Shown in pieces: positions 1-61,683 of a stretch of DNA of 64,000 nucleotides (position 1 is its first letter; each line of letters opens with the position of its first letter). A program made the position numbers and the translations under genes. The notes below the pieces were generated by a model. It was not told the DNA's origin, ran no database searches, and saw nothing but the letters and a program-made list of their open reading frames with translations. Origin of the DNA: Mobula hypostoma (Eukaryota); the NCBI RefSeq assembly GCF_963921235.1, contig NC_086124.1:27900001-27964000 (forward strand), given 5' to 3'.

Positions 1-580
1 CAAGTGCAGTGTTACCAATCTTTTATGCTGAGGCTTCATAAGAGATTGGTCTGATGTAGTTTGAGTACCGGAGAGGGTCTGAATGAGATTAACCAGAATG
101 ATCCTGACAATGCACGGGTTAACATATGATGAGAATTTGATGGCTCTGGGCCGGTACTTGGTGGAGTTTAGACGAATGATGGGGGTGGGGGGGGTGGGGG
201 TGTAAATCTCATTCAATCCTATCAAATACTGAAAAGCCTAGACAGAGTGGACGTGGAGAGGATGTTTCCTCTCGTGGGGGAGTCGAGCACCAGAGGACAC
301 AGCCTCAGAATAGGAGGACATCCCTTTAGAACAGAGATGAGAAGGAACTTCTTTAGGTAAGTCCCTGAATTCATTGCCACAGACTGCTCTGGAGGCCACG
401 TCACTGGGTAGATTTAAAGATGAAGTTGAAAGCTTCTTCATCATTAAGGGTGTCAAAGGTTACGGGGAGAAGGCAGAAATACGGGGTTGAGTGGATAATA
501 AATTAGCCATGAAATGCCAAAGCAGACTCAATAGGCCAAATGGACAAATTCTGCTCCTATAATTTACGACCTTGTGGTGA
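1..580 (+). mobile_element. CR1 LINE 3' fragment
   Basis: Matches the degenerate CR1 ORF2 C-terminus and 3' UTR seen in better-preserved copies in this window (gagtggacgtggagaggatgtttcc, agagatgagaaggaacttctt). Boundaries approximate. Confidence 0.75.
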
Positions 581-714
581 TCAGCATGGTCCAGTTGGGC
601 TGAAGAGCCCATATCTGTATTACTCCATGACTGATGTAGAAAGGGGAGTTACTGGTCCTCACCAGATTACAGCAGGATTCTGTTCCTGCGAAACAATCAT
701 AACCTGAATGGGTT

Positions 715-2081
715 GAAAATGTGAACCAAATCACCCAATCATGTGGCAGCAACTCAATGCATCAAAGCATGCAGACAAGGCCAAGAGGTCCAGTTGTTGT
801 TCAGACCAAACATCAGATTGGGGAAGAAATGTGATCCAAGTGACTTTCACCATGGAATCTAGTGAAGTTGGCGCCTGTGTACAACGTCCCCCTGGTCGAC
901 ATCTACCAGATAGTCCATGAAACTGTTTATTTCACTTCTTTTACTTCTGCTTTTCATCTTAAATGTGTTTCTAGAACTGTTAAGAGCCTGTGATTTAGAG
1001 TTTGGAGATCAATTGGGTGACCTAGTGCTTTGCTGTCTCCAGGAAGATTCCAGGAAGCTCAAACAGCCTCAGGGCGAAGCAGCTTAAAGATAAGGTAGGG
1101 GCCAATGATCGAGTCCCTTTTGCCGAGTAAAGTGTCGAGGAAGATTGAATCTGAGGCAACTGCTTGCCTTTTGATTGCAGGGATGGATTTCTCTGCTGTC
1201 AGAGGAGTCTGTGTAGTGCCTTTCACTCACTGTTGTTGGAGGGTAGGCCTCTGTGTTTGAGTGGTCTCTCTCTCTCTCTCTCGCTGTTGGTCAGAGGACA
1301 TCACCAAGGTTCTGAATTTATGGATTGGACTATGGACTTCCAGTCTTATGATTTTTATATTCTATGTTTTCCCCTGTTCTTTCACCTTGTTATTGCATAG
1401 CATGTTTTGTTAGTTTTTTGTGTGGGGGAGGGGGTTTAGGGCTTGATGTTTTTGTTAGTTTTTTACGTGACGGAGTGGGGTTTAGATGGGTTGATGTTCT
1501 TGTAGCATTTTGATTTTTTTGTGCAGGGTGGGGGTTTGATGCTCCTGTTCAGTTTTGTTTTTTTTTGTGCCGGGGGGGGGGGGGGTTTGATGTTTATCTT
1601 TGAATGACTTCCACGGATTTCTTTTTTTCATGGCTATCTGGAGAAATGAATCTCAGAGTTGATACTGAATACATAGTTTGATAATAAGTGAACCTTTGAA
1701 CGATGCTGATGCACGACAGGGTGGTTTGAGTATCTCAGAAATTGTTGAGTTCCCGGGATTTTCAGGCACAAGTCTTAAGTTTAAAGTGAACAGTGTGAAA
1801 AACAAACCAAAAAAATTATCTACTGAGTGGCAGTTGTGGGCAAAAATGCCTTGTTAGTGTGATTTCAGAGGAGAATGGCCAGACTGGTTCCAGCTAACAG
1901 GAACACAATAGTAACTCAAAGAACCGCCTGTTACAATTGTAGTGTGCAGAAGAGCGTCAGTGAACGCAAACATTTCGAACCTTGAAGTGGATGGGCTACA
2001 GCAGCATAAGACCACGACCTTACACTCAATGGTCACTTTATTATGTAGAGGAGGTGCCTAATAAAGTGGCCACTGAGTGTA
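715..2081 (+). mobile_element. Tc1/mariner-derived non-autonomous element (MITE) split by an insertion at ~859-1701
   Basis: Internal sequence (agcaactcaatgcat...cagaccaaacatcag...gtgacttt) resumes at ~1702 (gggtggtttgagtatctcag). The right end is ...aataaagtggccactgagtg followed by TA. Same family as the copies at 2959, 17154, 19430 and 48820. Confidence 0.7.
859..1701 (+). repeat. Unclassified interspersed repeat (probable LINE 3' UTR) inserted into the Tc1 MITE
   Basis: Interrupts the MITE at ggaat|gat. It ends in gaatctcagagttg...tttgataataagtgaacctttgaac, a tail type resembling the one near 15200. Confidence 0.45.
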
Positions 2082-2160
2082 TAATATAGTGTTTGACAGA
2101 GTGTGAACCAGATCGTCACCAGTACACTGGACCCCAAATTATTCAGACTCTGAGCCTTAC

Positions 2161-2442
2161 CCCAAACTGCATGCAGCTTGTCAGGGACGCTCAAATGCTT
2201 GATTTCACAAGTGTAAGTGTCACCCTTCCCGGGGTCAATTTCGACCTGTAGCCGGACTTGGAACGTCCCATCCTGGTTGGGTAAAATTTTCGTCATTAGC
2301 ACTTCCCGATTGATCACTACACCATTCCGCAGCCACGTTGCGTGGATTTTCTTGGGATAAAATCCATGCACTTGGCATATCAGGGCCAAGGTATTCTCTC
2401 TGTTCTTCAGGTGTCTTGAGGTTATTGTGATAGTTGGCTTCG
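2161..2442 (-). CDS. WB: MHC W-category beta-chain-like gene, Ig C1-set (beta2) exon
   Basis: Acceptor ctgcag|CG at 2442 and donor TGG G|gtaag at 2161; 282 bp, phase 1/1. Translation: (A)KPTITITSRHLKNRENTLALICQVHGFYPKKIHATWLRNGVVINREVLMTKILPNQDGTFQVRLQVEIDPGKGDTYTCEIKHLSVPDKLHAVW. It has the C1-set LxCxVxGFYP, W and YTCxxxH motifs. LPNQDGTFQ is class I alpha3-like (P235/G239), not the class II beta NGDWTFQ. Confidence 0.85.
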
Positions 2443-2958
2443 CTGCAGTGGACAGAAACACATTGAAGCTGAACTTGGTTACAGGATCAGAAAAAGTAAA
2501 GAGTAACAGAATTTCAAAGTTCAAAGTATGTTTACTATTAAAGCATGTGTATATCATACAACCTTGAGATTACAGCATGACGAAATGGAGGAACAGACAC
2601 AATGGGTCGAATGGTCTAATTCTGTTCCTATGTTTATTCACCTCCCTAGATGCTGCCTGGCCTACTTAATGGTGCGCGCGCGCGTGCGCGTGTGTGTGCA
2701 TGCACGTGCATACACACGTTGCTTTGGATTGCCACCATCTGCCGAATCTTCTGTGTTTAGAAACTGTCCCCCGGTCATCTGCCTCTGACCAGGGGTAGGG
2801 TTCTTTCTGTCACTCCCAGGTCACATGAAAGTTTCAAGAACTGTTGGTAACCCAAAGTTTCCATAAGGTGGAAATACTTAGAAATAAAAATTTGCATGGT
2901 GAGGTTAATTAGCTACAGGTTAGTGCAGATCAGAATCAGGTCTAATATCACTGACATA

Positions 2959-3428
2959 CACTCAGTGTCCACTTTATTAGGTACACCTGCTCATTAATAT
3001 AAACCTCTTATCAGCCAATCATGTTCCAGCAACTCAATGCATAAAAGCATGCAGACGTTGTCAAGAGGTTCAGCTGTTGTTCAGACCAAACATCAGAATG
3101 GGGAAGAAATGCAATCTAATTAACTTTGACCATGGACCAGATGGGGTGGTCTGAGTATCTCAGAAACTGCTGATCTCCTGGGATTTTCATACACAACGGT
3201 CTCTAGAATTCACAGAGAACGGTGCGACAAAGAAAAAACATCCAATGAGCGGCAGTTTTGTGGGTGAAAGCACCTTGTTAATGAGAGAGGTCAGAGGAGG
3301 ATGGCCAGACTGGTTCAATCTGACAGGACGAGGATAGTAACTCAAATCACCATGTGTTACAGCAGTGGTGTGCAGAAGAGCATCTCTGAATGTACAACAT
3401 GTCACACCTCAAAGTGATTGAGCTACAG
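2959..3428 (+). mobile_element. Tc1-derived MITE, truncated by the Buster insertion
   Basis: TA then cactcagtgtccactttattaggtacacc terminus, followed by degenerate Tc1 transposase N-terminal sequence. Confidence 0.7.
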
Positions 3429-5745
3429 CAGTGATTCCCAAGGGGAGTGCGGTATTGTATGATGTCATGGGGGAGGGCAGTAAATGGCACCCCCTTACTT
3501 GAGGCTTGAGACCTGACCGACCGTTAGTAGAGCAGGCACTTCCGACAAAAAGGATGAGGCACTGGAACACAGGAAGAACCACAGCTCAGCGGGCGGTGAG
3601 CACTTGTCCTCACAACAAGTCTGAAATTTGACAATCTCGTCCAACTTTACCAACCAAACAGACATTATTGAGGATGCGTAAGTTAGCAAACAGGGTGTCC
3701 AACAGTTACCCTTGACTTGCAGCATGGAACGAGTTCGTGCAATTTAACAGTTGATAGGTCAAGTACACCCTCTCAACCTTCGTGACAGATCTATGGAAAA
3801 CAGGTCGCGTAACGATACAGCGCTGGTCGGAACCAAATGGTGAAATAGAGTCAATCAGTGAACCTGTCAACACCGAGGAATCCTGTTGAGGTGTTCAAAG
3901 TGACCTCAGCTTCATATGTGCGGTCAAGAACCATCTTTGGGGATTACCAGACATTACGTGACTGGTCAATCGTGCTAACTGGAATAGTAAGAAGATGGCT
4001 TCCCAAACACAAGTTCTGTCCCGACTAACATTTGATTCCAATCTGAATCCTTGTCAATGTAATTTTTGCAGTTGTGATCGTCTTCATCTTTGCCTCGCTG
4101 TTCCTTTGCGTGCCGCTGCCATCGTTCCATCCGTGTCAACTCACTGCCGTCAACATCCGATAGGCATTCCCAGTGGTGTTAATTTATTATTTTAATTTAG
4201 CCCCGTTAACAATGGGTAAGTATGTACGGTGCGATCTCTACAAGCTTGAAGGCGGTGAAGCCTTGAATTCTAATCCTGCTAAGAAACAGAAACTACACAA
4301 AGTGTGCCAATACAAAGTTACGTACCTGAAATATGGTTTTATTCCATCCCATTAGATCAGCAGCGCCCCATGTTTCCTATTTGTAATACTGTACTGTCTA
4401 ATGAATCCATGAAACCATCAAGATTGCAGGAACGCTTCTGCAAAAGACACCCTGAAAAGGCTACTTATGGTATTACTCGGTTCCAGAAGATGAAAGAAGC
4501 ATTGGAAAACCATTGCACACTCGAGTCATTTGCCAAGAAATGACCTTGCTGGTGATCTCATTGCTTCTTATATCATTTCCAAAATGATAGCAAGGTGTGG
4601 AAAATCTCATACTATTGGTGAAAGATTAATAATGCCTGCTGTATCAGAAGTGCTCACCCCTGTTCTGAAAATGGAAACCAGTATTTTAAAATCAATTCCT
4701 CTGAGCAATAGCTCATAGTATTGATGAAATGAGTGAAGATAAGGAATATCAACTGTGCACAGAGCCACAAAAAACAGAATTTGGGATTCAACTGGATGAG
4801 TCAACAGTGTAAGGTAATGCGGCATTGCTAAAGTCATATGTACAGTTTATCAAAAAGGGAAAAAGCGATTCTCTTTTGTAAAAAGTTAAAAACATATCAA
4901 CAGAGAAACAATCTATGATGAGCTCAAAATGTATATTGAAGATGAAAATATTTCAATTAGGAACATGATTTCTTGTACAAGAGATGGAGCACCATAAATG
5001 ACAGGTTGCCATGCCGGTTTAGTGACATTAATGAAAAAAGAAATTCCAAGTCTGTTTGCAATCCATTGTGTTATTCATCATCGATACCTTGCAGCCAAAA
5101 ACCTCAGCTCGTGACCTTTTTCAAGCATGACTCTTGTAATACCTGCTATCAACAAAATTAAAGCTCATCCATTAAATAGCAGAATATTTCACCATTTATG
5201 CCAAGATAACAATGCAGAGGTTGAACGCTTGCTTCTTCACACTGAAATGTGTTGGCTGTCAAAAGGCTGCTGCTTAAAACATTTCTTTGATCTTTTTGAC
5301 ACTGGTGGAAGTCAACAAGATTGAACTTCTATATGAAGATGTGGTAAACAAAGCCAATCTGTATGACAAACTGAACATTCTAAATACGAAACTGCAGCGT
5401 GAAAACCAATTTAATCCAGGCAAAAAGCGCAGTGCCCACTTTTATCAGAAAATTGGAAATATGTAAGCAAAACATTGGGAGAAGAATGTTCTCAGTTTCC
5501 CTGCATGAGAAGTATGGCACTCTCTTTCACAGATGGTGATTTGCAAGAGTGCTCCTTACACCTGCAGTCACCAAAGAAAGATTTTCAGAATTGATTCAAG
5601 GATTTGAACGATCCAGAAATTTTGGACTGGATAATTAGCCCATTCCTTTGCAAGGTGGAAGAACAGAAAGAGGGCTTGCAAGAAGAAATTACCAAAATTC
5701 AGAATAAGGGAGAAGCAAAAGTGCTTATTTAAAAATGTCCATTTT
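3429..5745 (+). mobile_element. hAT Buster/Charlie-type DNA transposon, decayed SCAND3/ZBED5-like transposase
   Basis: 5' terminus cagtgattcccaa is preceded by agcTAcag (nnnTAnnn Buster target pattern). Frameshifted ORF pieces: YLKYGFIP, VLSNESMKPSRL, HTIGERLIMPA, INKIKAHPLNSRIF...LLLHTEMCWLSKG. Cut on the right by the L1. Confidence 0.85.
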
Positions 5746-5746
5746 G

Positions 5747-8700
5747 GGACTTCGGGGTTGAGCATGGAGTGACTGGGTGCGTGTGAGTGTGGCTCCCGAG
5801 TTTTATTGAAAATCTACCTGCTTATCTTTACCGTTTTCTCGAGATAACTGAATATTTAACATTGTGAACCCCGGGACGTTGCTGGACACTGAAATGGGAA
5901 ATAAAATGTACCTTCGAAGTAAAACTGGGGAAACAGATAGTGAAGCCTCGAGCAAGAAAGCTGATGTTACAGTAATGGTGCTGTTGCACGTTGCTGGACC
6001 TGGACCTGCACTGCCCGATGACTTGGAGAGGCTTTGTTTAGTACTTCTTACTGACATGATGCAAGTGGTGCATTCTGTCCTAAAAAGAGAACTTGAAGAT
6101 GCTTTGTCACCAGTGAATGCTACCATGGAACAAATTATGTCTGCTTATGAGTCACACGACGAACGCATTCCTGAGTGATTACAGTGACCGACTGGTGAGC
6201 GCCGAAGCCGCCATTGCAGCGTTGCAGAGCGAAAACGCGTTTCTGAAGGGAAAGCTAGATGACCTCAAAAATCGGTTGCGGAGATCCAATTTGAGAGTGG
6301 TTGGCATTCCTGAAAATTTGGAAGGTTCGGACTCTGTTAAACTTATGACCGAGTTTTTTGACGAAGTGCTGGGGACAAATTTCTTCCCAAGGCCTCTTGT
6401 GCTTTTGTGTGCTCACCAAGTTGGGCCTAAACCATCCAGTGTCTCTGAAGCTAAGCAAACGAGACCAAGAACGTTCCCGGTTCTCTTTCACTTCTTTAAG
6501 ATAAGCAATGCATCAACAGACGGAAGCAGGAGCTGTATTTCCGCGGACATCGCGTGTTTTTTTTAATGAAGATTTTAGTGCGGAGTTGGGGAAAAAACGA
6601 GCAGCTTTTGAGGAGGTGAAATCCCTGCTTTACAGGAAAGGGGTCAGGTTTGGCCTCTTGTATCCTGCCCAGCTCCAGGTCATGCGTGAAGGTAAAAAGC
6701 ATTATTTCGATACACCAGAGGCGGCCAAAGAGTTTTAACATTTGCGCTGGGGAGAAGAAGAACGAGAAAAGCAATGACTTTTTTTTTGGGTTATTCATGC
6801 AGTATTGAAGGGGCCTCCTGCCGAGGCAAACTGTTAATTTTCGCAATCCACTTCTTTGTTCATTTTTTCCAGTTTAATTTGTGGAACACGATCGGGTCAA
6901 ACTGCTGTGCTGCCAAAACTGATTAACAAAAACTTTTAACCAGCAAAATGTAAATATTTGGGATTTGTATCTCTGGTGTTTAGTTTCCTAGTTTTTTTTA
7001 AATGGTTTGCTTGACCTGTGTTATCTTTAGCCTATATATATTACAGGTAGAATAAGTAATCGTATAAATTTTAAGGAGGGGAGCCACCCTGGATTAGATT
7101 GAAAGTTTGGTTGTATGGGGAACGCTTTGGAAGTGTTTTGTTTGGTACTGCCTGTGATCATCCTCAGTTGGGGAGGTCGATCTAGTTTTCGGGGGTTAAT
7201 TGGGTTTTTTTGTTGTTTGTGTAAAGGGGTGGGGGGAGTGTTTTGGGGTATTTCCATGGTAGCTTATTATTTTGTGTGTTACGGATTGGCCAGACTTTCT
7301 TTTCATTGTGCGTTATTGTGTGCAGCTTGTGCCCTTGCACTGTTTTGGATTGTAGGCCCTGTGTGTCTTTTGATATGGTTAACATGAGTGCTGATGATGG
7401 AGGCCACCCTGTGAGGTTTATTTCTTGGAATGTAAAGGGGCTCAATGGTCCTGTTAAAAGAGCTAAAGTTTTCTCTCATCTCAAACAATTAAAAGCAGAT
7501 ATACCATTTCTACAAGAGTCACATTTAAAAGTGTAAGACCATAATAGACTTTGTAAAGCGTGGATTAGTCAGGTTTTTCATTCCAGATTTAATAGTAGGT
7601 CCAGGGGGGTGGCAATATTAATCACCAAAAGAATGTAGTTTACACCATCTGATGTAATCAGTGACCTTAATGGTCGCTTTATTATAGTCTCTGGATCTCT
7701 CTTTCAGATACCTGCCATTTTGGTAAATGTTTATGCCCCTAATTGGGATGACGTCCACTTTGCAAATAAGGTTTTGTCATTAATACCTAACCTGAATACA
7801 CACCGGCTAATCTTTTCAGGAGATTTGAATTGTGCTATGACCCACTGCTTGATAGGTCTAGCTCTAGGGAAACATTTTCTGGTATGGCAAAGGCCATCTC
7901 GATGTTTATGCAACAAAATGGTTTTGTGGATCCTTGGAGATTTTTGAATCCATCATTCTCTTTCTTTTCTCATGTTCAACACTCCTATTCCAGGCTAGAC
8001 TATTTCTTTATAGATAGCTCCTTGATACCAATGATTAGACAAATTGAGTATACTGCTATAGTTATATCTGATCACTCGCCCATGAAACTGGACCTATGTT
8101 TTCCTTTAAACATTAGAGAACGGCCTCTGTGGAGACCCCTTTTGCTTTCCAATGAGAAATTTTGTAGTTATATCGGCTAACATTGACACATTTTTCGAGA
8201 CCAACAAAACTGAGTTGATATCGTACTCTTTACTTTGGGAAACTTTAAAAGCTTTCTTGAGGGGTCAAATAATATCTTATACTTCACATGCCAATAAAGA
8301 GCGTAGGAAGGAAATGCAAGTGTTATTGCAATCTATTTTGAACTTGGATAGGCAATATTCCGAGGCACCCACTGCAGAATTATATAAAAGCTGGGCTGAT
8401 TTGCAAGTGAAGTTTAATCTTCTCTCTACAAACCAATCAGAACAATTAATTCTTAAGGCACGTGGCCTCTAATATAGTGACAAGGTGAGCCGGCTTATGG
8501 CTCATCAGTTGAAGCGTCAAGCTGCATCACGACTTATTCCCCAGATAAGAGACACGCACCAAAACTTGACAAGCAATCCAAAAGAGATTAATAACATCTT
8601 TTGCAACTTTTTATTCCTCTCTGTATGCCTCAGAGTTCCCCTCAGGTATAACAAATATGGAACATTTTTTTAGTTAATTTGGAAATACCAACTCTGGAAC

Positions 8701-10790
8701 CAGAGGAGGTGGAGAATTTAGATCGGGCTCTTGGGTAGGAAGAGATTAATAATGCCATTATGCCTATGCAGAGTGGTAAATCCCCAGATCCTGATGATGA
8801 TCTGATATAATTTTATAAGAAATTTAAGGTAAGCTCATACCGGTCCTTCTAGAAGTGTTTCAGGAATCTTTGGAGAATTGTTCCTTACCCCCTACTCTTT
8901 CACAGGCATCTATTTCACTTCTTCTTAAGAAGGACAAGGACCCGACTCAATGTGGATCATATCACCCCATCTCACTTTTGAATGTGGATGTGAAAATTTT
9001 GGATAAAGTGCTTGCATGTCGTTTAGAACATCCCCTTCCCAAGATAATCTCAGATGATCAAACAGGTTTTATTAAAAATTGCCATTCTTTTTTTAATATC
9101 CCTGGACTGGCTGATGTGGTTTATTCACCCAGTGATTCTCCAAGTCTGGAGGTTGTTATCTCCTTGGATGCGGAGAAGACATTTGATAGAGTGGAGTGGG
9201 TATACTTGTTTAGTGTTTTGGAGAAATTTGGATTTGGCAGAATATTTGTAGCCTGGGTTAAGCTATGATATCACTTGCCTTTAGTGTGTATACAGACAAA
9301 TTATTTTCGATCTGACTATTTCCCATTAACATGTGGCACTCACCAAGGCTGTCCATTGTCCCCTCCTCTTTTTGCAATTGCAATTGAGCCTCTTTCTATT
9401 GCACTTAAGTCAACAACATTATTTCAAGGTGTTAGGAGAGGCGACATAGAACACCGTGTATCCCTATATGCTGATGACCTCTTACTTTATGTTAGCGACC
9501 CTGCAGGTAGCTGTCCTGCTATTGTGTCATTATTAGGCCAATTTGGAGCCTTCTCTGGCTATAAACTGAACCTTCAAAAAAGCAAATGATTTCCCATTAA
9601 TAACTTGGCCCTACAGATCTGACAGGAATCCTTGCCTTTTCCTTTATCTCAAGATGGTTTTGTATACCTATGAATACATGTTACTCGCTCTTTTACATCT
9701 CTGTCTGAAGCTAACTACAGGCCTCAGGTTGGCCAAATGAAGGCTGATTTTGAGAGATGGCAGTTTACCCCTTACTATAGCTGGGAGAATTCAATCAGTG
9801 AAAATGACTATACTTTCCAGATTTCTTTATTTGTTCCAGTGCTTACCAGTTTTCTTATCTAAGTTATTTTTCAAATCAATCGACCAAGCTATAATCTCTT
9901 TTATTTGGGAAAATAAGGTCCCAAAGGTTAATAAGTGCACTCTCCAAAGAGGTCATGACGTAGGTGGAATGGGCCTTCCTAGCTTTGTTCATTATTATTG
10001 GGCATCGAACATTCAAAAAGTATTATTTTGGCTTCACCGGCCAGATATAATCTGGTGCCTGCTTGAGTCACGGTCTTGCCACTCCTCGTCTCTCCCAGCT
10101 TTGGTGTATTCTTCCTTACCATTGAAATCCTCTCAATTCACATCTAACTCGGTCGTGCTCTCCACCCTCAAAATTTTTAATCAATTTTGCTTCACTGTAA
10201 GTTCACATCAGCTTCAGTTTTGGGTCCCATTCATAGAAACCATCTATTTCTTCCCTCCACACTCGATTCATTTTTTAGACAATGGGGTTTGAACTGTCTT
10301 ATGCGCATTAAGGATTTGTACACTGATAACATATTGATAGTTTCGATAACCTGTGCAGTAAATATGGCCTTCTGCATAATCATTTTTTAAAACACCTGCA
10401 GATTCACCACTTTGTCAGGGAAAAATGTCCCTCTTTTCCTGATCTACCACTTGCTATGTTGTGGGGAAAAACTCACTCATAGCTTTAATAATAAAGGGCT
10501 GATCTCTGTACTATACTCTCAGCTGATGTCTTTGGGAGTTCAAGATCTAAACAAAACTAAAACTAGGTGGGAGGTTGATCTTGGTATGGATCTGGTTGAG
10601 GAATATTGGGCAAAAGCATTGAATAGGGTTCATTCCTCATCATCATGTGCTAGACTGGGGCTCATACAATTTAAAGTTTTACACAGGGTACATTTATGTA
10701 AAGCCAGCCTTGCTGACATATATCCTGGGACAGATGCTGGTTGTGACACATGGACTGTTCATAAATCTGATGGCAGAAGGGAAGAAACTT
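5747..10790 (+). mobile_element. Near full-length decayed L1-clade LINE (ORF1 ~5894-6738; ORF2 ~7384-10790)
   Basis: ORF1 pieces include DDLKNRLRRSNLRVVGIPE and FGLLYPAQL. ORF2 has the APE endonuclease ISWNVKGLNGPVKR, RT QGCPLSP and SLYADDLLLY, and a C-terminal QFKVLHR. Many stops and frameshifts. Confidence 0.9.
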
Positions 10791-10839
10791 TTCCTGAACC
10801 CTTGAGCGTATGCCTTCAGGCTCCTGTACCTCCTCCCTG

Positions 10840-11290
10840 AAGGTAGCACTGAGAAGAGGGCATGTCCTGTGTGGTGAGGGTCTTTGATGATGGATGATGC
10901 CTTTTTGAGGCATCACTCCTTGAAGATTCCTGAATGCTAAGGAGGCTCGTACCCATGATGGAACTGACTGAGTTCACAACTTTCTGCAGCTTCTTTCAAC
11001 CCTTTGCAGTATCTCCACCCCTCCCCCCATGTGCAGCCAGTTATACCTCTCCACGGTATATCTGTAGAAATTTGACATACCAAATCTCCTCAAACACGTA
11101 ATGAATATAGTCGCTGTCGTGCCTTTTTGTAACTGCCTCGACATGTAGGCCCCAGGATAGATCCTCAGAGACATTGATGTCTAATAACTTGAAATTGCTC
11201 ACTCACTCCACTTCTGATCCCTCTTTGAGGACTGGTGTGTGTGTTCCCTTGTTTTGCCCTCTCTGTCAGCCTCTGCCACACAGCCTACTT
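10840..11290 (-). mobile_element. Rex1/Babar-type LINE 3' fragment
   Basis: Reverse complement encodes the decayed IIKDPHHTGHALFSVLPSG-type terminus shared with the copies at 16.7, 35.4 and 50.3 kb. Confidence 0.6.
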
Positions 11291-11299
11291 GAACATCGC

Positions 11300-11812
11300 T
11301 TTGAAAACAAAACTTTAATTCCACTTCCCACTCCCATGCCATGGCCTCCTCTTCTGTCAGGATGAGGCCGCACTCAGGTTGGAGGAGTAACATCTTGTAT
11401 TCTGCCTGGGTAGCCTCCAACCTGTTTGCAGGACCACCGATTTCCCGAACTTCCAGTAATGCCCCCCTCCACTTCATCATTCCCCATTCCCTTTTCACTC
11501 TCTCACCTTACCTGCACATCACCTCCCTCTGGTGCTTCCCCCCTTTCTTTCTTCCATGCCCTTCTGTCCTCTCCTATCAGATTCCTCCTCCTCCAGCCCT
11601 GCACCTCTTTTCCCAATCAACTCCCCAGTTCCTTACTTCACCCCTCTCCACCTCCTAACTCTGACTCCTCAACTTGTTTCTCCAGTCCTGATGAAGGGTC
11701 TCAGCCCGAAACGTCGTCTCTACTCTTTTCCATAGATGCTGCCTGGCCTGCTGAGCTCCTCCAGCACTTCGTGTGTGCTGCTTGGATTTCCAGCATCTGC
11801 AGATTTTTTTGT
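11300..11812 (+). mobile_element. Penelope-like element 3' fragment (end of GIY-YIG region plus 3' terminal repeat)
   Basis: Homologous to 61100-61680 of the long Penelope copy (actcaggttggaggag, gggtagcctccaacctg, gatgctgcctggcctgctg). Confidence 0.75.
11683..11720 (+). ncRNA. Minimal type I hammerhead ribozyme motif with a damaged stem I
   Basis: cagtc CTGATGA agggtctcagccc GAAAC GTC gtctc. The catalytic core is intact; the 3' stem-I strand is mutated from gactg. Confidence 0.55.
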
Positions 11813-11826
11813 GAAAATAAACTTAC

Positions 11827-12084
11827 CCGTCAGAGCTTGAACAGCCTGGTGAACGATCTCCATGGCAAAAGGCATGTCATTAACATAGCGGGCAACATTT
11901 CTGATAAGCTTTTGATCGCGGTTCAGTTTGTCCACGAAAGACTTCACAAGTGGATTGATGGCCACAAACTTTCCTGTTGTATAATCAAAGCCAACAGCCA
12001 CTTCTCCATTGTAAGCAAACTGCAGGGTAGCCATTGAGAACTCCGAACCTTTACCAGAGAAAGTCACTTGACCGATGTGCATTC
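11827..12084 (-). CDS. WB: MHC W-category beta-chain-like gene, membrane-distal groove (beta1) exon
   Basis: Acceptor ccag|GA at 12084 and donor ACG G|gtaagt at 11827; 258 bp, phase 1/1. Translation: (G)MHIGQVTFSGKGSEFSMATLQFAYNGEVAVGFDYTTGKFVAINPLVKSFVDKLNRDQKLIRNVARYVNDMPFAMEIVHQAVQALT. GMHIGQ resembles class I alpha2 GSHTxQ, and QFAYNG resembles QYAYDG. Confidence 0.85.
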
Positions 12085-12219
12085 CTGGCAAGCGAATAAT
12101 AATAGATCCGTTAGCCATTTGTGAGAGTGAAATGGCTCATTTTAAAACCTTAAAATTAATCAAACTGAAAGAACAAATTTGTCTCTCCCTTCTGTGGAAA
12201 CCTCACCATTCTGACGGCA

Positions 12220-13220
12220 ACAGGTGCCACTCCTCCAGAACCACCTCTCCCTCCCACTGTAAAACTCCAATAGCTGGGATTTGGTGTTGGTACTGCTGAC
12301 CCTTCACCCTCACTCTCGGCACCCTCCTCTTCCCCAGTTCGATGCCCACGTCCCCACCCACCTCTTCGCCCAAACCCCTCCTCGCCATCGAATTGCCCTT
12401 CCCTCAACACCTCTCCCCACAGACATCTCTCCTCACCGTCCACACCCAACTCTCCACCCACCCCCTCTCTCCCTACCCACCCTCGGTGACTACTTCCCTC
12501 CCTCCGCAAACATCCTTGGCGGTCCCTCCCCACCCACTCACCCATAGCCCCCTCCCAATCTCAGTGCCCTGTATCCTCCCCACTCTCTGCACCCCCACAA
12601 CTCCACTCCTCAGCCCTCCGTCCCACCCTTAGCACCCCTCTCCCTCCCCACACACCTTTGGCACCCTAATTCCTTCCCCACACAACCATCCCCAGTGACC
12701 CCTCCTCTTCCACCACCCCCTCAACAATACTCAATCCACCTCCACTCCCTCCCTTCCTGCTTTCTCTCAGTGCATCCTTCCCTTCCCACGCCCGTTCTGT
12801 GCCCTCTCTCCTCTCCTTTGGAAGCCCCTCCTCTCCCATGGTGCCCACTCCAGTACTCTCCATTGGTGCCCCCTCCTCCCTACCTTCCCTTTGCACCCCC
12901 TTCCCACCCTCCTTTGGTGTTCACTCCCTACCCACCCTGCCTCAATGTCACTCCCCTCTCCTCCCCACCCTCCATCGGTACCCATTCCCCTCCCCTCCCC
13001 TCTTAACCCTCCCTCAGTTCCCCTCCCCACCCTCCCTTGGTGCTACTCTCTCCACCTTCCTTCAGCGAGGTCTCCCTTTCCCTCCTGACCTTTACCCTCC
13101 CCTCCCTCCCTCCCTAGTTGCCCTCTTCCCTCTCTTGCCCACCCTCCCTCAGTGTCCCCACCCCTCTCTACCTCCCTACGCTCCATCGGTGCCCCCTCCC
13201 ATCCCTGCTGCGCTGCGCTC
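12220..13220. repeat. ~1 kb C-rich low-complexity tract filling most of intron 1
   Basis: The plus strand is dominated by C and T runs, so it is G-rich on the gene's sense strand. It produces only spurious Pro-rich or Gly-rich ORFs. Confidence 0.85.
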
Positions 13221-13225
13221 CTCAC

Positions 13226-13370
13226 CCAGGGCAGTGGAGCCGTTGAGGAGGAGGAGGAAGGCGGCGAGCAGAGAGGGAGAGCGGCGTCGCCTCACGCCGG
13301 CCGGCGGCTCCTGAGACAGCGGGAGGAGCAGCTGGCTCACGGTTCGCGGAGACGGCATCATTCCCCACAT
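13226..13370 (-). CDS. WB: Leader (signal peptide) exon of the WB-like gene
   Basis: In-frame ATGs at 13370, 13361 and 13358. Translation: MWGMMPSPRTVSQLLLPLSQEPPAGVRRRRSPSLLAAFLLLLNGSTAL(G). The phase-1 donor CTG G|gtgag at 13226 joins in frame to the GA of the next exon. Lies in a CpG-rich segment. Confidence 0.8.
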
Positions 13371-13560
13371 CCCTTTCACCGAAGGCTGAGGACCTTGTCA
13401 CACAGCCTCTACGCGCGAAACCGATCGCCAGCCGGCAGGTCCCGTAACGGGAGGCGATCGATGTAGAAGTTTCCCCGGCTGAGTGGACGGCCGCTGCCAC
13501 AGACAGGCGGGGCGAGGCGGGAGAAACGCCTTCTGTTTCCACATGGCGCTTTATTCTCAA
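13230..13560 (-). promoter_or_regulatory. CpG island / probable promoter of the WB-like gene
   Basis: Locally dense CpG in an otherwise CpG-depleted window. It overlaps the leader exon and contains a GC box (ggcggggcg at ~13506). Confidence 0.6.
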
Positions 13561-13629: not shown

Positions 13630-13968
13630 AATAACAGGTGGGGGGGGGGTAGGTGTGTGAGTGGGACACCAGGTGAGGGGGGGGTAGGTGTGTGAGTGGG
13701 ACACCAGGTGAGGGGGGAGGTAGGTGTGTGGGTGGGACACCAGGTGAGGGAGAGGTAGGTGTTTGGGTGGGATACCAGCTGAGGGGAGGTGGTTCGGTTG
13801 GTGGGATGCCAGGTGAGAAGGGAGGTGGGTGGGTGTAATACCAGGCGAGGGGGAGGTGGAATGGGGGGAAAGCAGGTGAGGGGGAAGGTGGGTGGATGGG
13901 ATACCAGTTGTGCCATAAGGTGGGTGATAGGGGGGAGGAGTATACCAGGTGAGAGGGACGGTGTGTGT

Positions 13969-14004
<36 letters not shown>
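13630..14004 (+). repeat. G-rich ~35-bp minisatellite followed by a (TG)n microsatellite (13961-14004)
   Basis: About four close copies of ggtaggtgtgtgagtgggacaccaggtgagggg, then degenerate copies, then a TG run. Confidence 0.85.
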
Positions 14005-14006
<2 letters not shown>

Positions 14007-27735: not shown

Positions 27736-29879
27736 AGAAACCATAGAAAAACTACAGCACAGAAACAGGCCTTTTGGCCCTTTTTGCCTGTGCTGAACCA
27801 TTTTCTGCCTAGTCCCATTGACCTGCACATGGACCATATCCTCCATACACCTCCCATCCATGTATCTGTCCAATTTATTCTTAAATGTTAAAAAAGAACC
27901 CGCATTTACCACCTCGTCTGGCAGCTCATTCTATACTCCCACCACTCTCTGTGTGAAGAAGCCCCACCTAATGTTCCCTTTAAACTTTTCCCCCCTCACC
28001 CTTAACCCATGTCCTCTGTTTTTTTTTCTCCCCTTGCCTCAGTGGAAAAAGCCTGCTTGCATTCACTCTATCAATACCCATCATAATTTTATATACCTCT
28101 ATCAAATCTCCCCTCATTCTTCTACACTCCAGGGAATAAAGTCCTAACCTATTTAACCTTTCTCTGTAACTGAGTTTCTCAAGTCCTGGCAACATCCTTG
28201 TAAACCTTCTCTGCACTCTTTCAACCTTATTAATATCCTTCCTGTAATTTGGTGACCAAAACTGAACACAATACTCCAGAATCGGCCTCACCAATGTCTT
28301 ATACAACGTCATCATAACATTCCAGCTCTTATTCTCAATACTTTGATTAATAAAGGCCAATGTACCAAAAGCTCTCTTTATGACCCTATCTACCTGTGAC
28401 GCCACTTTTAGGGAATTTTGTATCTGTATTCCCAGATCCCTCTGTTCTACTGCACTCCTCAGTGCCTTACCATTTACCCTGTATGTTCTACCTTGGTTTG
28501 TCTTTCCAAAGTGCGATACCTCACACTTATCTGTATTAAACTCCACCTGCCATTTTTCAGCCCATTTTTCCAGCTGGTCCAAGTCCCTCTGCAGGCTCTG
28601 AAAACTTTCCTCACTGTCCACTACACTTCCAATCTTTGTATCATCAGCAAATTTGCTGATCCAATTTACCACATTATCATCCAGATCATTGATATAGATG
28701 ACAAATAACAATGGACCCAGCACTGATCCCTGTGGCACACCACTAGTCACAGGCCTCCACTCAGAGAAGCAATTCTCTACTACTACTCTTTGGCTTCTTC
28801 CATTGAGCCAATGTCTAATCCAGTTTACCACCTCTCCATGTATACCTAGTGACTGAATTTTCCTAACTAACCTCCCATGCGGGACCTTGTCAAAGGCCTT
28901 ACTGAAGTCCATGTAGACAACATCCACTGCCCTCCCTTCATCCACTTTCCTGGTAACCTCCTCAAAAAACTCCAGTATGACCTATCACACACAAAGCCAT
29001 CTTGACTCTCCCTAATAAGTCCCTGTCTATCCAAATGCTTGTAGATTCTGTCTCTTAGTACTCCCTCCAATAACTTACCCACTACCGACGTCAAACTTAC
29101 TGGCCTCTAATTTCCCGGATTACTTTTCAATCCTTTTTTAAACAATGGAACAACATGAGCCACTCTCCAATCCTCTGGCACCTCACCCATAGACACCGAC
29201 ATTTTAAATATATCTGCCAGGGCCCCTGCAATTTCAACACTAGTCTCCTTCAAGGTCCGAGGGAACACCCTGTCAGGTCCTGGGGATTTATCCACTTTAA
29301 TTTGCCTCAAGATAGCAAGCACCTCCTCCTTTTCAATCTGTACAGTTTCCATGATCTCACTACTTGTTTCCCTTAATTCCATAGACTTCATGCCAGTTTC
29401 CTTAGTAAATACAGACTCAAAAAAACCATTTAAGATCTCCCTCATTTCTTTTGGTTCCGCACATAGCCAACCACTCTGATCTTCAAGAGGACCAATTTTA
29501 TCCCTTACAATCCTTTTGCTCTTAATATACCTGTAAAAGCTCTTTGGATTATCCTTCACTTTGATTGCCAAGGCAACCTCATGTCTTCTTTTAGCCTTCC
29601 CGATTTCTTTCTTAAGTATTTTCTTGCACTTTTTATACTCCTCAAGCACCTTATTTACTCCCTGTTTCCTATACATGTCATACAACTCTCTCTTCTTCTT
29701 TATCAGAGTTGCAATATCCCTTGAGAACCAAGGTTTCTTATTCCTATTCACTTTGCCTTTAATCCTGACAGGAACATACAAGCTCTGCGCTCTCAAAATT
29801 TCTCCTTTGAAGGCTTCCTACTTACCGATCACACCCTTGCCAGAGAACAATCTGTCCCACTCCACGCTTTTTAGATCCT
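27736..29879 (-). mobile_element. 5'-truncated CR1 LINE inserted in the RTE
   Basis: 321-aa RT ORF at 27980-28945 ([32 protein letters not shown]) and a tttctatggtttctat tail. A 5-bp ttcat repeat lies at both junctions (27731-27735, 29880-29884). Confidence 0.9.
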
Positions 29880-30927
29880 TTCATCTTATTTATTGCATTA
29901 CAACCTTCAGATTTTAAAATACTTGGACCTTCAATGTTCTTCTTAATTTCTGGTTTTTCACCTCGATCGTCTTCAAACAATTCCTGAATATACTCAGTTC
30001 ATAATCTGTTCATAATCTCATCTTTTTCCATGATAATGGTACCGTCCTTTGTTTTCAAACATCCACCTGAAGAACAGAGGAGCTTTTTACCAGTGATATT
30101 CTTGATTTGTTGATGTAACCTTTTTGAATCAGTGATAAGGATTCTTTCCATTTGCTCACATTCCTGATTTAACCATTCTTCTTGGCTTTTTGACATAAGC
30201 TTTTAACTTCTTTATCTAAGGACTTATATTCATAGGATTTGCTTTTTACCATCTCCTTTCTTCCATTAGATTTTTGATTTCATCTGTCATCTATTTATTC
30301 TTTGTGCTTTTTTTCTTTTTTGGGAATCACTGACTTTCCTGATTCTACCAAGGCATCCTTTAGAGAGTTAAATTTCATTTCTACATGATTGCTATCATCT
30401 TCAACAGATCCTATTTCTAGACTTTGAAATCTATTCCTTACTTCAATTGTAAATTTTTGTCTTAAGTTTACTTCTTTAATTAATTGCAAGTAGCCAAGGG
30501 ATTGTACAAGTTTTTGCTTGTTTAGTTTTTTAAGTTTTACTTTTACATGACATACTACTGGGTTATGGTCTCTGTTACAGTCTGCACCTGGATATGTTTT
30601 GCATTGAGTCACTGAGTTTCTAAATCTTTGGTTTATAGTAATAAAGTCAATTTGATTTCTAGTGTTATCACCTGGACTTTTCCAGTTCCACAAATGTCTT
30701 GGATGGTTTTTAAAGTAGGTGTTCATAATGACCTGATTATTCATCTTGCACCATTCTACCCATTTGTCACCTCTTTCACTTCTTTCCCCTAGTCCAAATT
30801 TTCCTATGGTATTTCCATCAGCACCTTGTCCTACTTTAGCATTTAGATCTCTCATGACAATAACAATATCTTGCTTGTTCAAGCTCTTCATAGAATTTAT
30901 CTATATCCTCATTTGTTCCATCTGTTG

Positions 30928-33266
30928 TTGAGCAATGAGGAAGGGTTAATTAGCAATCTTGTCGTGAGAGGACCCTTGGGTAAGAGTGACCATAATATGG
31001 TGGAATTCTTCATTAAGATGGAGAGTGACATAGTTAATTCAGAAACAAAGGTTCTGAACTTAAGGAAGGTTAATTTTGAAGGTATGAGACGTGAATTAGC
31101 TAAGATAGACTGGCAAACGACACTTAAAGGGTTGACGGTGGATATGCAATGGCAAGCATTTAAAGATCGCATGGACGAACTACAACAATTGTTCATCCTA
31201 GTTTCACAAAAGAATAAATCAGGGAAGGTAGTGCACCCATGGCTGACATGGGAAATTAGGGATAGTATCAATTCCAAAGAAGAAGCACACAAATTAGCCA
31301 GAAAAAGTGGCTCACCTGAGGACTGGGAGAAATTCAGAGTCCAGTGAGGAGGACAAAGGGCTTAATTAGGAAAGGGAAAGAAAATTATGAGAGAAAACTG
31401 GCAGGGAACATAAAAAGTGACTGTAAAAGCTTCTATAGATATGTGAAAAGAAAAGGATTGGTTAAGACCAATGTAGGTCCCCTACAGACAGAAACAGGTG
31501 AATTGATTATGGGGAGCAAGGACATGGCAGACCAATTGAATAAGTACTTTGGTTCTGTCTTCACTAAGGAGGACATAAATAATCTTCTGGAAATAGTAGG
31601 GGACAGAGGGTCCAGTGAGATGGAGGAACTGAGGGAAATACATGTTAGTAGGGAAGTGGTTTTAGGTAAATTGAAGGAATTAATGGTAGATAAATCCCCA
31701 GGGCCAGATGGTCTGCATCCCAGAGTGCTTAAGGAAGTAGCCCAAGAAATTAGTGATAATTTTTCAGAACTCTTTGGATTCTGGACTAGTTCCTGAGGAT
31801 TGGAGGGTGGTTAATGTAACCCCACTTTTTAAAAAAAGGAAGGAGAGAGAAACCGGGGAATTATAGACCAGTTAGCCTAACATCAGTGGTGGGGAAAATG
31901 CTAGAGTCAGTTATCAAAGATGTGATAACAGCACGTTTGGAAAGCAGTGAAATCATCAGACAAAGTCAGCATGGATTTGTGAAAGGAAAATCATGTCTGA
32001 CGAATCTCATAGAATTTTTTGAAGATGTAACTAGTAGAGTGGATAGGGGAGAACCAGTGGATGTGGAATATTTGAATTTTCAAAAGGCTTTTGACAAGGT
32101 CCCACACAGGAGATTAGTGTGCAAACTTAAAGCACACGGTATTGGGAGTAAGGTATTGATGTGGATAGAGAATTGGTTGGCAGATGGGAAGCAAAGAGTG
32201 GGAATAAACGGGACCTTTTCAGAATGGCAGGCAGTGACTAGTGGGGTACCGCAAGGCTCAGTGCTGGGACCCCAATTGTTTACAATATATATTAATGATT
32301 TAGATGAGGGAATTAAATGCAGCATCTCCAAGTTTGTGGATGACACGAAGCTGGGCGGCAGTGTTAGCTGTGAGGAAGATGCTAAGAGGATGCAGGGTGA
32401 CTTGGATAGGTTAGGTGAGTGGGCAAATTCATGGCAGATGCAATTTAATGTGGATAAATGTGAGGTTATCCACTTTGGTGGCAAAGACAGGAAAACAGAT
32501 TATTATTTGAATGGTGGCCGATTAGGAAAAGGGGAGGTGCAACGAAACCTGGGTGTCATTATACACCAGTCATTGAAAGTGGGCATGCAGGTACAGCAGG
32601 CGGTGAAAAAGGCAAATGGTATGCTGGCATTTATAGCAAGAGGATTTGAGTACAGGAGCAGGGAGGTACTACTGCAGTTGTACAAGGCCTTGGTGAGACC
32701 ACACCTGGAGTATTGTGTGCAGTTTTGGTCCCCTAATCTGAGGAAAGACATCCTTGCCATAGAGGGAGTGCAAAGAAGGTTCACCAGATTGATTCCTGGG
32801 ATGGCAGGACTTTCATATGATGAAAGACTGGATCGACTAGGCTTATACTCATTGGAATTTAGAAGACTGAGGGGGGATCTTATTGAAACGTATAAAATCC
32901 TAAAGGGATTGCACAGGCTAGATGCAGGAAGATTGTTCCCGATGTTGGGGAAGTCCAGAACGAAGGGTCACAGTTTGAGGATAAAGGGGAAGCCTTTTAG
33001 GACCGAGATGAGGAAAAACTTCTTCACACAGAGAGTGGTGAATCTGTGGAATTCTCTGCCACAGAAACAGTTGAGGCCAGTTCATTGGCTATATTTAAAA
33101 GGGAGTTAGATATGGGCCTTGTAGCTAAAGGGGTCAGGGGGTATGGAGGGAAGGCTGGTACAGGGTTCTGAGTTGGATGATCAGCCATGGTCATACTGAA
33201 TGGCGGTGCAGGCTCGAAGGGCTGAATGGCCTACTACTGCACCTATTTTCTATGTTTCTATGCTTC
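30928..33266 (+). mobile_element. 5'-truncated young CR1 LINE inserted in the RTE
   Basis: 407-aa RT ORF at 31886-33109 and a tttctatgtttctatgcttct tail. Highly similar to 55330-57684. Confidence 0.9.
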
Positions 33267-53560: not shown

Positions 53561-55006
53561 TGTGATTGGTCTCAAGTTGTCAATAATGGCAAAAAATGTT
53601 CGGCTTTTGAACTTCTGAGAAGACGTTTGAGCTTCAAAAAGTGGATCAAGAGTGCTGGAACCACTGAAATCATCATACGTGCGATTTTGCTTGTGTTTTC
53701 TTCAAGTTTGCTGTTGATAATCTTCACACTCAGATCCATGGCTTTTTGCTCAACGTCTGAAAAAGTGGACCAAATAATTTGAATATATCCATGCAAGGAT
53801 TCATAGAGTGCACATGCTGTGTTCAAGTCTTGGCCAGAAGATTGCAAAGAAGCACTGGTCATTTGAAAACGCTGTCATACTTGATCCCACAATATGACCA
53901 TTATTCCTGTTTCCAACTTCATCATGGTTGAAAGTAGTCCATGAGCCTGTTGTCGACACTCTGCCTTCTGATCATTGTTATTTGAAATGTCATCCAAGAC
54001 TTGTTTTATTGCAGAAAAGCTGTGTAAAAGTGCTTTTGTTGCAACTGCACGAGCTGACCACCTGGTATCTGACATTCTTTTCACAATGGGGAAGTGAGCA
54101 CCACCATCAGATAATGCAGCAGAAAGGAGATCCCACTGATAAGTAGAAGCAGGAAAAAATGTGTACAGGCGTTCTACAAATTGAAAGAAAATTAATACTT
54201 CTTGACAACATTCAGCAGCACATTTTCCAACCAATTTTAGTGAATAGAATGTAATCCGCAAACTCATTCAGCTCTTTAATTCGTGTCACTGTACTTGCCA
54301 CTCATGTTGCTGGCATTGTCATAAATTTGACCATGGCAGTCTTTTATATCAATGTCATTTTCCTTTAAAAAGTCAAGTAAACTAAGTGAGCTGTTCAGCA
54401 CTATAACCTTCCATATCCAAAAACTTCACAAATCTTTCAACCGGTCCAGACGGCAAAACATAGCGCAAAGTCAAAGTCAGCAGGTCCACATTCGATATGT
54501 CTGGAGTAGAATCCAATGGAACCGAATAATACTTGTATTTCTTCACTTCACCGATAATGTGATCCAGTATGCTGGATCCAATCAGATTGATGAATTTCTC
54601 ACACGTTGTTTTAGAAAGGTATGATTTATGTCCCCTTACTTGGTTTGCATGAGCATTTATATGCTCTGCCAGAAAAGGGTCAAAGTTGGCCAGTAATTCT
54701 AACAACCCCAAGTAATTTCCATTATGAGGAGAACCAACAAAGTGAAAAGCCTCATTCTTCTAAAAACTTTACAACTTTAATTATTCACTCCAGAAGTATG
54801 CGCCAATACTTTTGTTCAGTCTCCATTTCTTTCACAAGGTGGGAAGCGACACGTTTAGCTTCGTTTTTGTGCATCAACAGTGAAATTAAGGCTTGTCTAT
54901 GTGAGGAACTTTCTTCATGTCGATGTAATAAATTGCTTGCATTTTTCCAGTCATTAAACCCCTCTTCACTAAACTTTGATGAACATCCTGAAGTCATAAC
55001 CTTGCA

Positions 55007-61200: not shown

Positions 61201-61683
61201 CCGTCTGGGTAGCCTCCAACCTGATGGCATGAACATTGACTTCTCTAACTTCCGCTAAGGACCCACCTCCCCCTCGTACCCCATCTGTTACTCATTTTTA
61301 TGCACACATTCTTTCACTCTCCTTTTTCTCCCTCTGTCCCTCTGAATATACCTCTTGCCCATCCTCTGGGTCACCCCCCCCCCCGTCTTTCTTCCCGGAC
61401 CTCCTGTCCCATGATCCTCTCGTATCCCCTTTTGCCTATCACCTGTCCAACTCTCGGCTCTATCCCTCCCCCTCCTGTCTTCTCCTATCATTTTGCATCT
61501 CCCCCTCCCCCTCCAACTTTCAAATCCCTTACTCACTCTTCCTTCAGTTAGTCCTGACGAAGGGTCTCGGCCTGAAACGTCGACTGCGCCTCTTCCTATA
61601 GATGCTGCTTGGCCTGCTGCGTTCACCAGCAACTTTGATGTATGTTGCTTGAATTTCCAGCATCTGCAGAATTCCTGTTGTTT
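58209..61683 (+). mobile_element. Near full-length Penelope-like retroelement (RT + GIY-YIG endonuclease)
   Basis: RT motifs LPKIHK..PGRPIVS, MDVQSLYTSIP, GVAMGT and LRYIDD (ORF 59317-60831). GIY-YIG VIYCVRCSRCGLLYIGETRRRLGDRFAEH (ORF to 61258). A 10-bp direct repeat gcattgccag lies at 58199-58208 and 61684-61693. Confidence 0.92.
61549..61586 (+). ncRNA. Minimal type I hammerhead ribozyme motif in the Penelope 3' terminal region
   Basis: tagtc CTGACGA agggtctcggcct GAAAC GTC gactg: CUGANGA core, short stem II, GAAA, ACGU palindromic stem III, GUC triplet and a stem I closing pair set. Confidence 0.7.

Follow-up and report, generated by a model that had tools for sequence, protein, structure and literature searches.

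A question raised by the DNA analysed here is to which category of the major histocompatibility complex (MHC) a gene belongs that has the exon architecture of a class II beta chain and carries motifs of class I heavy chains. The stretch comprises 64,000 nt of the devil ray Mobula hypostoma (NC_086124.1 27,900,001-27,964,000), lies near 28 Mb on chromosome OY992621.1 of assembly GCA_963921235.1 and contains 0 N bases; it is called the window below, and window coordinates count from its first letter. An earlier note, drawn from the letters of this DNA, had proposed that the gene is a W-category beta chain (WB). This identity was borne out by the ranking of an exhaustive protein search, by three trees and by the residues A32, G35, P57 and G61, which narrowed it to one lineage: we conclude with high confidence that the window gene is an intact W-category MHC beta-chain paralogue of M. 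hypostoma that belongs to the WB_DS1 lineage. Its gene structure, family placement, signature residues and divergence pattern were all established in the analysis reported here.

Structure of the window gene

The gene lies on the reverse strand, and its three exons in the window encode a leader, a groove (beta1) domain and an immunoglobulin (Ig) C1-set (beta2) domain (Table 1). Spliced together, they give 685 nt that are open throughout, with GT/AG borders and every junction in phase 1. The product is identical to residues 1-228 of XP_062891132.1 (P0001), a RefSeq model of 291 aa from M. hypostoma that bears the name 'rano class II histocompatibility antigen, A beta chain-like isoform X4'. Exon 1 supplies residues 1-49, also without a difference, and encodes a signal peptide with a long basic n-region followed by a hydrophobic core, while exon 3 preserves the two Ig cysteines along with the conserved Trp and carries P57 and G61. 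The exon coordinates, lengths and in-frame phase-1 junctions given in the earlier note thus all hold, and the motifs that it had picked out (GMHIGQ, QFAYNG and LPNQDGTFQ) are all present. The note calls such WB chains rarely annotated; this gene does have a RefSeq annotation, though with a generic class II beta-like name.

Beyond residue 228, P0001 continues into a connecting peptide (CP), a transmembrane (TM) segment and a cytoplasmic tail. The CP, TM and cytoplasmic exons were not found in the window, as had been anticipated for the TM exon; they are located further 3', to the left of the window. According to the NCBI coordinates, the coding sequence of the gene spans 34.7 kb, which puts its last exon ~21 kb left of the window.

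No further MHC-like exon was found in intron 1 or intron 2 when 157 MHC class I, class II and W proteins were compared with the window by tblastn, which agrees with the earlier observation that the introns hold no second groove exon. The length of intron 2 is explained by comparison with a sister copy of the gene (the P0006 gene, in locus L002) on the same chromosome: ~9 kb of the intron (window ~2562-11529) is absent from that copy, and the blocks flanking it adjoin in L002 (megablast). The long intron is therefore a repeat-filled insertion in which no conserved exon is hidden.

Placement in the WB_DS1 lineage

To place the gene, P0001 was compared by an exhaustive HMMER search with 1.84 billion representative proteins. 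The best match outside the batoids was P0012 (E 5e-61, 45% identity over 236 residues), a cluster formed by a basking shark (Cetorhinus) protein and the great white shark (Carcharodon) protein XP_041035565.1 (P0159). It was followed by a zebra shark (Stegostoma) protein, P0020 (E 2e-37), and then by a catshark protein, P0026 (E 2e-33); proteins that clearly belong to class I or class II beta appeared only at ~1e-20. The shark and skate proteins were typed against Datasets S1 and S2 as published by Okamura et al. 2021 (PMC8713811). Here, P0159 equals the 'great white shark WB DS1L' rows except for one residue at an exon border, whilst P0020 corresponds to the whale shark WB_DS1-like row, a little skate fragment (P0027) to little skate WB_DS1-like, and P0026 to the WB_DS3 rows. 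The window gene itself shows the WB_DS1 pattern in both domains, with G-x-H-x-x-Q, FS, L-Q-F-A-Y-N-G and F-D-Y-T-T in beta1 and AKPTITITS...GFYP...TWLRNG in beta2.

The same placement was obtained by phylogeny. In the main maximum-likelihood tree (LG+C20, 44 rows, beta1+beta2, with bony-fish WB and WB_Nds5L left out), the query, seven other batoid proteins and two shark WB_DS1 proteins formed one group with a support of 100/98, and the same WB_DS1 grouping was recovered from the single domains (beta2, 98/90; beta1, 98/96). The conventional class II beta chains, all of which have Trp61, made up a clade of their own (98/94) with the query outside it, and a further branch (97/94) divided the class I-like rows from the query.

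Domain identity and signature residues

The two extracellular domains point towards different MHC classes. The groove exon matched MHC_II_beta as its sole Pfam family (27.6 bits; cut-off 20.9) and was weakly similar to chicken class II beta among solved structures. The Ig exon matched the Pfam C1-set family (E 3e-17), and its closest PDB sequences were the alpha3 domains of MR1 and of classical class I. Many TAL-effector chains also had high whole-sequence scores in the PDB search with the Ig exon; as they contained zero accepted stretches, they were set aside as compositional artefacts. An AlphaFold2 model of the chain, built from an 18-row alignment, reached a per-residue confidence (pLDDT) of 85-90 in beta2 and 70-83 in beta1, and consists of four strands, a broken helix, a seven-strand Ig domain and a TM helix. 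When it was compared with the PDB by Foldseek, the best matches were class II beta chains (HLA-DR, DP, DQ and DO, and chicken BL2) over ~185 columns that take in both domains, with E ~1e-14. A shape like that of class II beta together with an Ig domain like that of class I is the combination that defines the W category (PMC8713811).

The residues at the domain interface show the same combination. At position 32 the query has A, where class I-like rows have A, G or S and class II beta rows F or T. At position 35 it has G, as do all 26 class I-like rows; the class II beta rows have R, K or Q, with one G. P57 is likewise shared with 26 of 26 class I-like rows, whereas four of the seven class II beta rows carry Q. 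Finally, the G at position 61 occurs in 19 of 26 class I-like rows, and all seven class II beta rows have W there. Among the motifs, FAYNG supplies A32 and G35, LPNQDGTFQ the P57/G61 region, and GMHIGQ supplies H3 and Q6, which are likewise of the WB/class I type. These last two were judged by eye and from the published alignment, not by column counts, because strand 1 of the class I and W rows was wrongly aligned by MAFFT. In addition, the TM segment of P0001 (GYVIGIIAGIIGILIAVSGG), encoded outside the window, aligns glycine for glycine (G..G..G......GG) with the houndshark WB_DS1 row of Dataset S3.

Recent duplicates of the gene and a WA-type gene on the same chromosome

The window gene is one of several recent duplicates that together form a cluster of more than 280 kb. 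Besides L002 with the sister copy, the chromosome carries locus L001 with a more diverged paralogue (P0009). L002 also contains, at its right end, part of another copy, which is 92-93% identical to window 1-4291 and shares the intron 2 insertion; as this insertion is missing in the P0006 copy, it predates one duplication and postdates another.

In the NCBI annotation, the window is covered by a single gene of 279 kb with four isoforms (XP_062891129.1 to XP_062891132.1). Isoforms X2 (320 aa) and X4 (291 aa) use the window exons, X1 and X3 use a leader, beta1 and beta2 of the P0008 type, and both pairs use common 3' exons; X1 and X2 have an extra 29-aa exon between TM and tail. Nested inside this gene are the P0006 gene, the P0009 gene and an SRCR/C1-set model. 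Either two paralogues have been merged by the annotation, or distant cassettes are truly spliced to common TM exons.

A gene of the alpha-chain type of the W category (WA) was found in L001 (Table 1). It lies on the strand opposite to P0009, 4.6 kb beyond the last exon of that gene, so that the two are arranged tail-to-tail. It is 67-75% identical to little skate WA_DS10-like fragments and carries the full signature shared by WA and beta-2-microglobulin (beta2m): Tyr8, Leu37 (replacing the Ig Trp), Leu55, Phe57 and Trp61. A search with its alpha2 exon returned one protein within the length limits, from Hemitrygon, which NCBI names 'beta-2-microglobulin-like'. To judge from these sequences, the W system, with WA and WB, is complete on the chromosome of the window. 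We also observed that a database model fuses the C1-set exon of this WA gene with SRCR domains into a 473-aa product, which looks like a mis-merge.

Divergence of the groove exon between copies

The window gene and the L002 copy provide one DNA pair in which the parts of the gene can be compared (Nei-Gojobori counts). Exon 1 is 100% identical, the 130 bp upstream of it 96.9%, the introns 93-98% (intron 1, 93%) and exon 3 92.9%; exon 2 is 84.1% identical. Exon 3 shows 11 nonsynonymous and 9 synonymous changes, with a ratio of nonsynonymous to synonymous divergence (omega) of 0.33 and a deficit of replacements (p 0.02); the Ig domain is under purifying selection. In exon 2, 37 changes are nonsynonymous and 4 synonymous (dN 0.216, dS 0.073, omega ~3), and the excess gave a Fisher p of 0.04 for nonsynonymous against synonymous sites and a p of 9e-7 for nonsynonymous sites against intron 1.

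The replacements are concentrated in part of the exon. Within codons 45-69, 17 of 25 are replaced, and the remaining eight contain 0 silent changes. The synonymous divergence of exon 2 (0.07) does not differ from that of the introns, and this equality, together with the lack of silent changes in codons 45-69, speaks against an origin by import of an old segment that had already diverged. Of the beta1 residues, 31 are replaced, 22 of them in the helical half (helices, model residues 93-132). A similar gradient was seen at the protein level in six batoid copies, which are 64-74% identical to the query in beta1, 82-90% in beta2 and 90-100% in the leader.

This pattern fits diversifying selection on a binding surface. 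What counts against a firmer statement is that the omega estimate is based on one copy pair with very few silent changes, and the signal is therefore graded as suggestive. Tentatively, and with somewhat more doubt than conviction, we propose that WB_DS1 in the devil ray forms a cluster of near-identical units whose groove exon, chiefly its helical half, may be under positive diversifying selection, with promoter, leader, Ig domain, TM segment and introns kept alike. If true, this would be the first sign that the W category binds varied ligands or receptors as classical MHC does, with the variation spread across paralogues, not alleles.

Weighing the assignment against its alternatives

Several points weigh against the assignment to WB_DS1. 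First, position 37 of beta1 is V. This position is equivalent to class I D122 and is D or E in most WB; since the D hydrogen-bonds Trp61 of the partner, one listed interface contact is missing in the window copy. Second, the gene lacks the pair of groove cysteines and has V and M in the two columns, which hold C in all 26 class I-like rows and in 6-7 of the seven class II beta rows. Third, the beta1+beta2 tree settles neither the order of WB_DS1, WB_DS3 and class II beta nor the monophyly of all W beta lineages (DS1 with DS3) with respect to class II beta; Okamura et al. likewise left the order of W beta and class II beta open for these domains (PMC8713811). Fourth, no WA gene or exon was found in the 64-kb window by an Ig C1 motif scan or by tblastn with skate and shark WA fragments. 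Finally, NCBI fuses the window gene with a distant paralogue into one gene with four isoforms, which clouds the transcript evidence for the model.

The first two points are tempered by the relatives of the gene. At position 37, the eight batoid proteins have D (three), T (two), V, A and E (one each), and the shark WB_DS1 proteins E or D. In Dataset S1, the WB_DS1 rows have E and the DS3 rows other residues (PMC8713811); thus the D varies among published WB rows and is a characteristic residue rather than a universal one. The groove cysteines are present in 0 of 8 batoid and 0 of 2 shark WB_DS1 proteins, so that their loss, common to all of them, is old and tolerated.

These losses nevertheless give some weight to a reading in which the window gene is a decaying recent duplicate, with groove replacements due to relaxed constraint or patchy gene conversion. 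Such decay would account for the missing D37 contact and cysteines and would be in keeping with a dead WB relic 10-20 kb away in the window, with ~9 kb of repeats inserted in intron 2, with chimeric and intron-retaining forms among the NCBI isoforms, and with an omega above 1 that is based on just 4 silent changes. We consider it improbable, because the gene has kept an open frame, every splice site, the two Ig cysteines, the Ig Trp and its TM segment, and the Ig exon has been held back from replacement (omega 0.33, p 0.02). Neutral decay predicts an omega of ~1, not 3, and would not have spared the leader, beta2 and the promoter; an imported old segment is contrary to the agreement between the dS of exon 2 and the intron divergence, and the cysteine loss is an old one.

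That the window gene is instead a divergent nonclassical member of conventional class II beta, outside the W category, is very improbable. The groove exon matches no Pfam family other than MHC_II_beta, HLA class II beta chains lead the structural matches, NCBI calls all members of the family class II beta-like, and the two-domain tree separates class I from WB_DS1, WB_DS3 and class II beta together, without settling the order among these three. However, the invariant Trp61 (W153) of class II beta is G in the query and the class II groove disulfide is absent. Grouping with class II chains, which the earlier note had named as contrary to its proposal, is not what the trees gave: class II beta forms its own clade (98/94) without the query, which joins WB_DS1 at a support of 98-100. 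WB_DS1 proteins also score ~40 orders of magnitude better than any class II beta, and the paralogue P0009 is accompanied by a beta2m-like WA gene, not by a class II alpha gene.

Least credible of all is a class I heavy chain, or a fragment of one, with an alpha1 exon that has disappeared or escaped notice. In its favour, no solved structure is closer in sequence to the Ig exon than MR1 and class I alpha3, a skate fragment belonging to this family goes by the NCBI name 'MHC class I-related gene protein-like', and A32, G35, P57 and G61 are class I-like. Against it, no alpha1-type exon, the other outcome contrary to the proposal, was found by tblastn anywhere in the window, the leader splices in phase straight to the groove exon, the short intron 2 of the sister copy leaves no room for another conserved exon, the alpha2 disulfide is absent, the TM segment is of the class II beta/WB type, and class I-like sequences lie across the 97/94 branch.

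A proposed model for the WA/WB dimer

A WA/WB heterodimer and its surface expression have been shown for recombinant chains of the tiger salamander only (PMC8713811). Based on these published experiments and on class I structure, pairing, surface expression and ligand binding can be inferred for the chain of the window gene. The WB chain would pair with an alpha chain of the WA_DS10 type into a class II-shaped heterodimer on the cell surface, in which the contacts between domains would be of the class I kind. Trp61 of the beta2m-like alpha2 domain of WA would pack beneath the sheet of the groove, where it would meet Q6, A32 and G35 of WB, and P57 of WB would contact Tyr8 of WA; WB has G61 where class II beta carries its invariant Trp. 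With D37 and the disulfide lost, the Trp pocket and the groove would be held somewhat differently. The divergence of the groove exon between duplicates, almost wholly by amino-acid replacement, could then reflect selection for different ligand or receptor specificities.

Upstream block and other content of the window

The presumed core promoter of the gene is a conserved block directly upstream of exon 1 (Table 1). An alignment of window 13371-13560 with L002 9811-10000 and L001 about 9820-10009 gave long invariant runs, although the beta1 exons of the P0001/P0006 type and of the P0009 type are only ~41% identical (protein). The block contains the element GGGGAAACTTCTACA and is a candidate for a shared promoter. 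An ISRE-like (interferon-stimulated response element) site, GGAAACAGAAGG at 13540-13529, was dropped as a regulatory site since it is conserved only partly in the diverged paralogue. Just upstream of the block lie a minisatellite and a GT run.

The window also holds the relic of a second WB_DS1-like gene. Its Ig exon has ~67% DNA identity to the live exon and finds its best protein match in shark WB_DS1 (46%); both Ig cysteines have been replaced (TGC>TAC and TGT>TCT). Retroelement open reading frames occupy three further regions.

Table 1 Coordinates of the window gene, its upstream block, the WA-type gene and other features (window coordinates unless L001 is named)
Feature	Coordinates	Strand	Details
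Exon 1: start codon and signal peptide	13370-13226	-	145 bp; ATG start; donor GT; phase 1 end
Intron 1	13225-12085	-	1141 bp; sense strand purine-rich; degenerate short repeats
Exon 2: beta1 (groove) domain	12084-11827	-	258 bp; AG/GT; phase 1 at both ends
Intron 2	11826-2443	-	9384 bp; interspersed repeats, also present elsewhere in the window
Exon 3: beta2 Ig C1-set domain	2442-2161	-	282 bp; AG/GT; phase 1 at both ends
Proximal upstream block, presumed core promoter	13560-13371	-	~190 bp; near-invariant among WB paralogue types
WA_DS10-like gene	L001: alpha1 33850-33752, alpha2 31997-31683, TM 30179-30066	-	
Minisatellite	13635-13907		35-bp unit, ~6-8 copies
(GT)22 run	13961-14005		
WB_DS1-like relic, groove remnant	~34810-34682	-	ends in a stop
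WB_DS1-like relic, Ig exon	23354-23090	-	acceptor and donor kept; 5-bp and 2-bp deletions; in-frame stop
Retroelement region	27980-33109		reverse transcriptase fragments at 31886-33109 (+) and 27980-28945 (-)
Retroelement region	55006-57588		endonuclease of LINE (long interspersed nuclear element) type and reverse transcriptase at 55006-56850
Retroelement region	59317-61258		reverse transcriptase, then a weak GIY-YIG match; would fit a Penelope-like element

Comparison with known systems

The 2021 study reported W-category genes from sharks and little skate, from some teleosts and lobe-finned fish and from salamanders, and distinguished three elasmobranch lineages (PMC8713811); in 2023 they were found in elasmobranch genomes to be multicopy, syntenic and outside the MHC (PMC10751288). 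As these genes had thus been reported in skates and as multicopy in elasmobranchs, the window gene adds a member to the category, which is not discovered here. In the W-category papers searched, whose coverage was incomplete, Mobula or selection on the groove exon was not found. What the locus contributes is a complete and well-resolved batoid WB_DS1 gene that had been hidden under a 'class II beta-like' annotation.

With class I heavy chains, both classical and MR1, the gene shares A32 (A117), G35 (G120), P57 (P235) and G61 (G239), and MR1 and class I alpha3 are the best-scoring solved structures for its Ig domain. Unlike class I heavy chains, it lacks an alpha1 domain and the alpha2 disulfide, has V in place of D122 and has a TM segment of the class II beta type. 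With conventional class II beta (HLA-DRB1, chicken BLB2 and shark class II beta), it has in common the series of leader, one groove exon, one Ig exon and TM, the overall fold of both domains (Foldseek E 1e-14) and the match to Pfam MHC_II_beta. It differs from them in the absence of Trp61 (W153) and of the beta1 disulfide Cys15-Cys79, in the presence of P57, in falling outside their clade, and in its presumed partner, a beta2m-like WA chain and not a class II alpha chain.

The closest system is the WB_DS1 lineage, whose members are WB_DS1 of the banded houndshark and the WB_DS1-like chains of great white shark, whale shark, spiny dogfish and little skate (PMC8713811). The window gene agrees with them in exon layout, in P57 and G61, in the glycine pattern of the TM segment, in the beta1 pattern G-x-H-x-x-Q...FS...L-[QR]-F-A-Y-[DN]-G...F-[ND]-Y-T-T and in the start of beta2, AKP-x-I-T-I-T-S. 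It departs from them in several respects: the protein is only 45% identical to that of lamniform sharks, residue 37 is V and not D or E, and no groove cysteine is left, whereas dogfish and bullhead shark keep one (strand 1). The D37 contact and the groove disulfide are thus dispensable in this lineage. In contrast to the head-to-head WA-WB pairs published for sharks (PMC8713811), the one readable WB-WA pair of Mobula is tail-to-tail. Moreover, the window locus shows an expansion of WB_DS1 in Mobula into several near-identical units among which the groove exon diverges fastest, and this fast-changing exon amid near-identical surroundings offers a testable hint that the ligands of these W-category chains may be variable.

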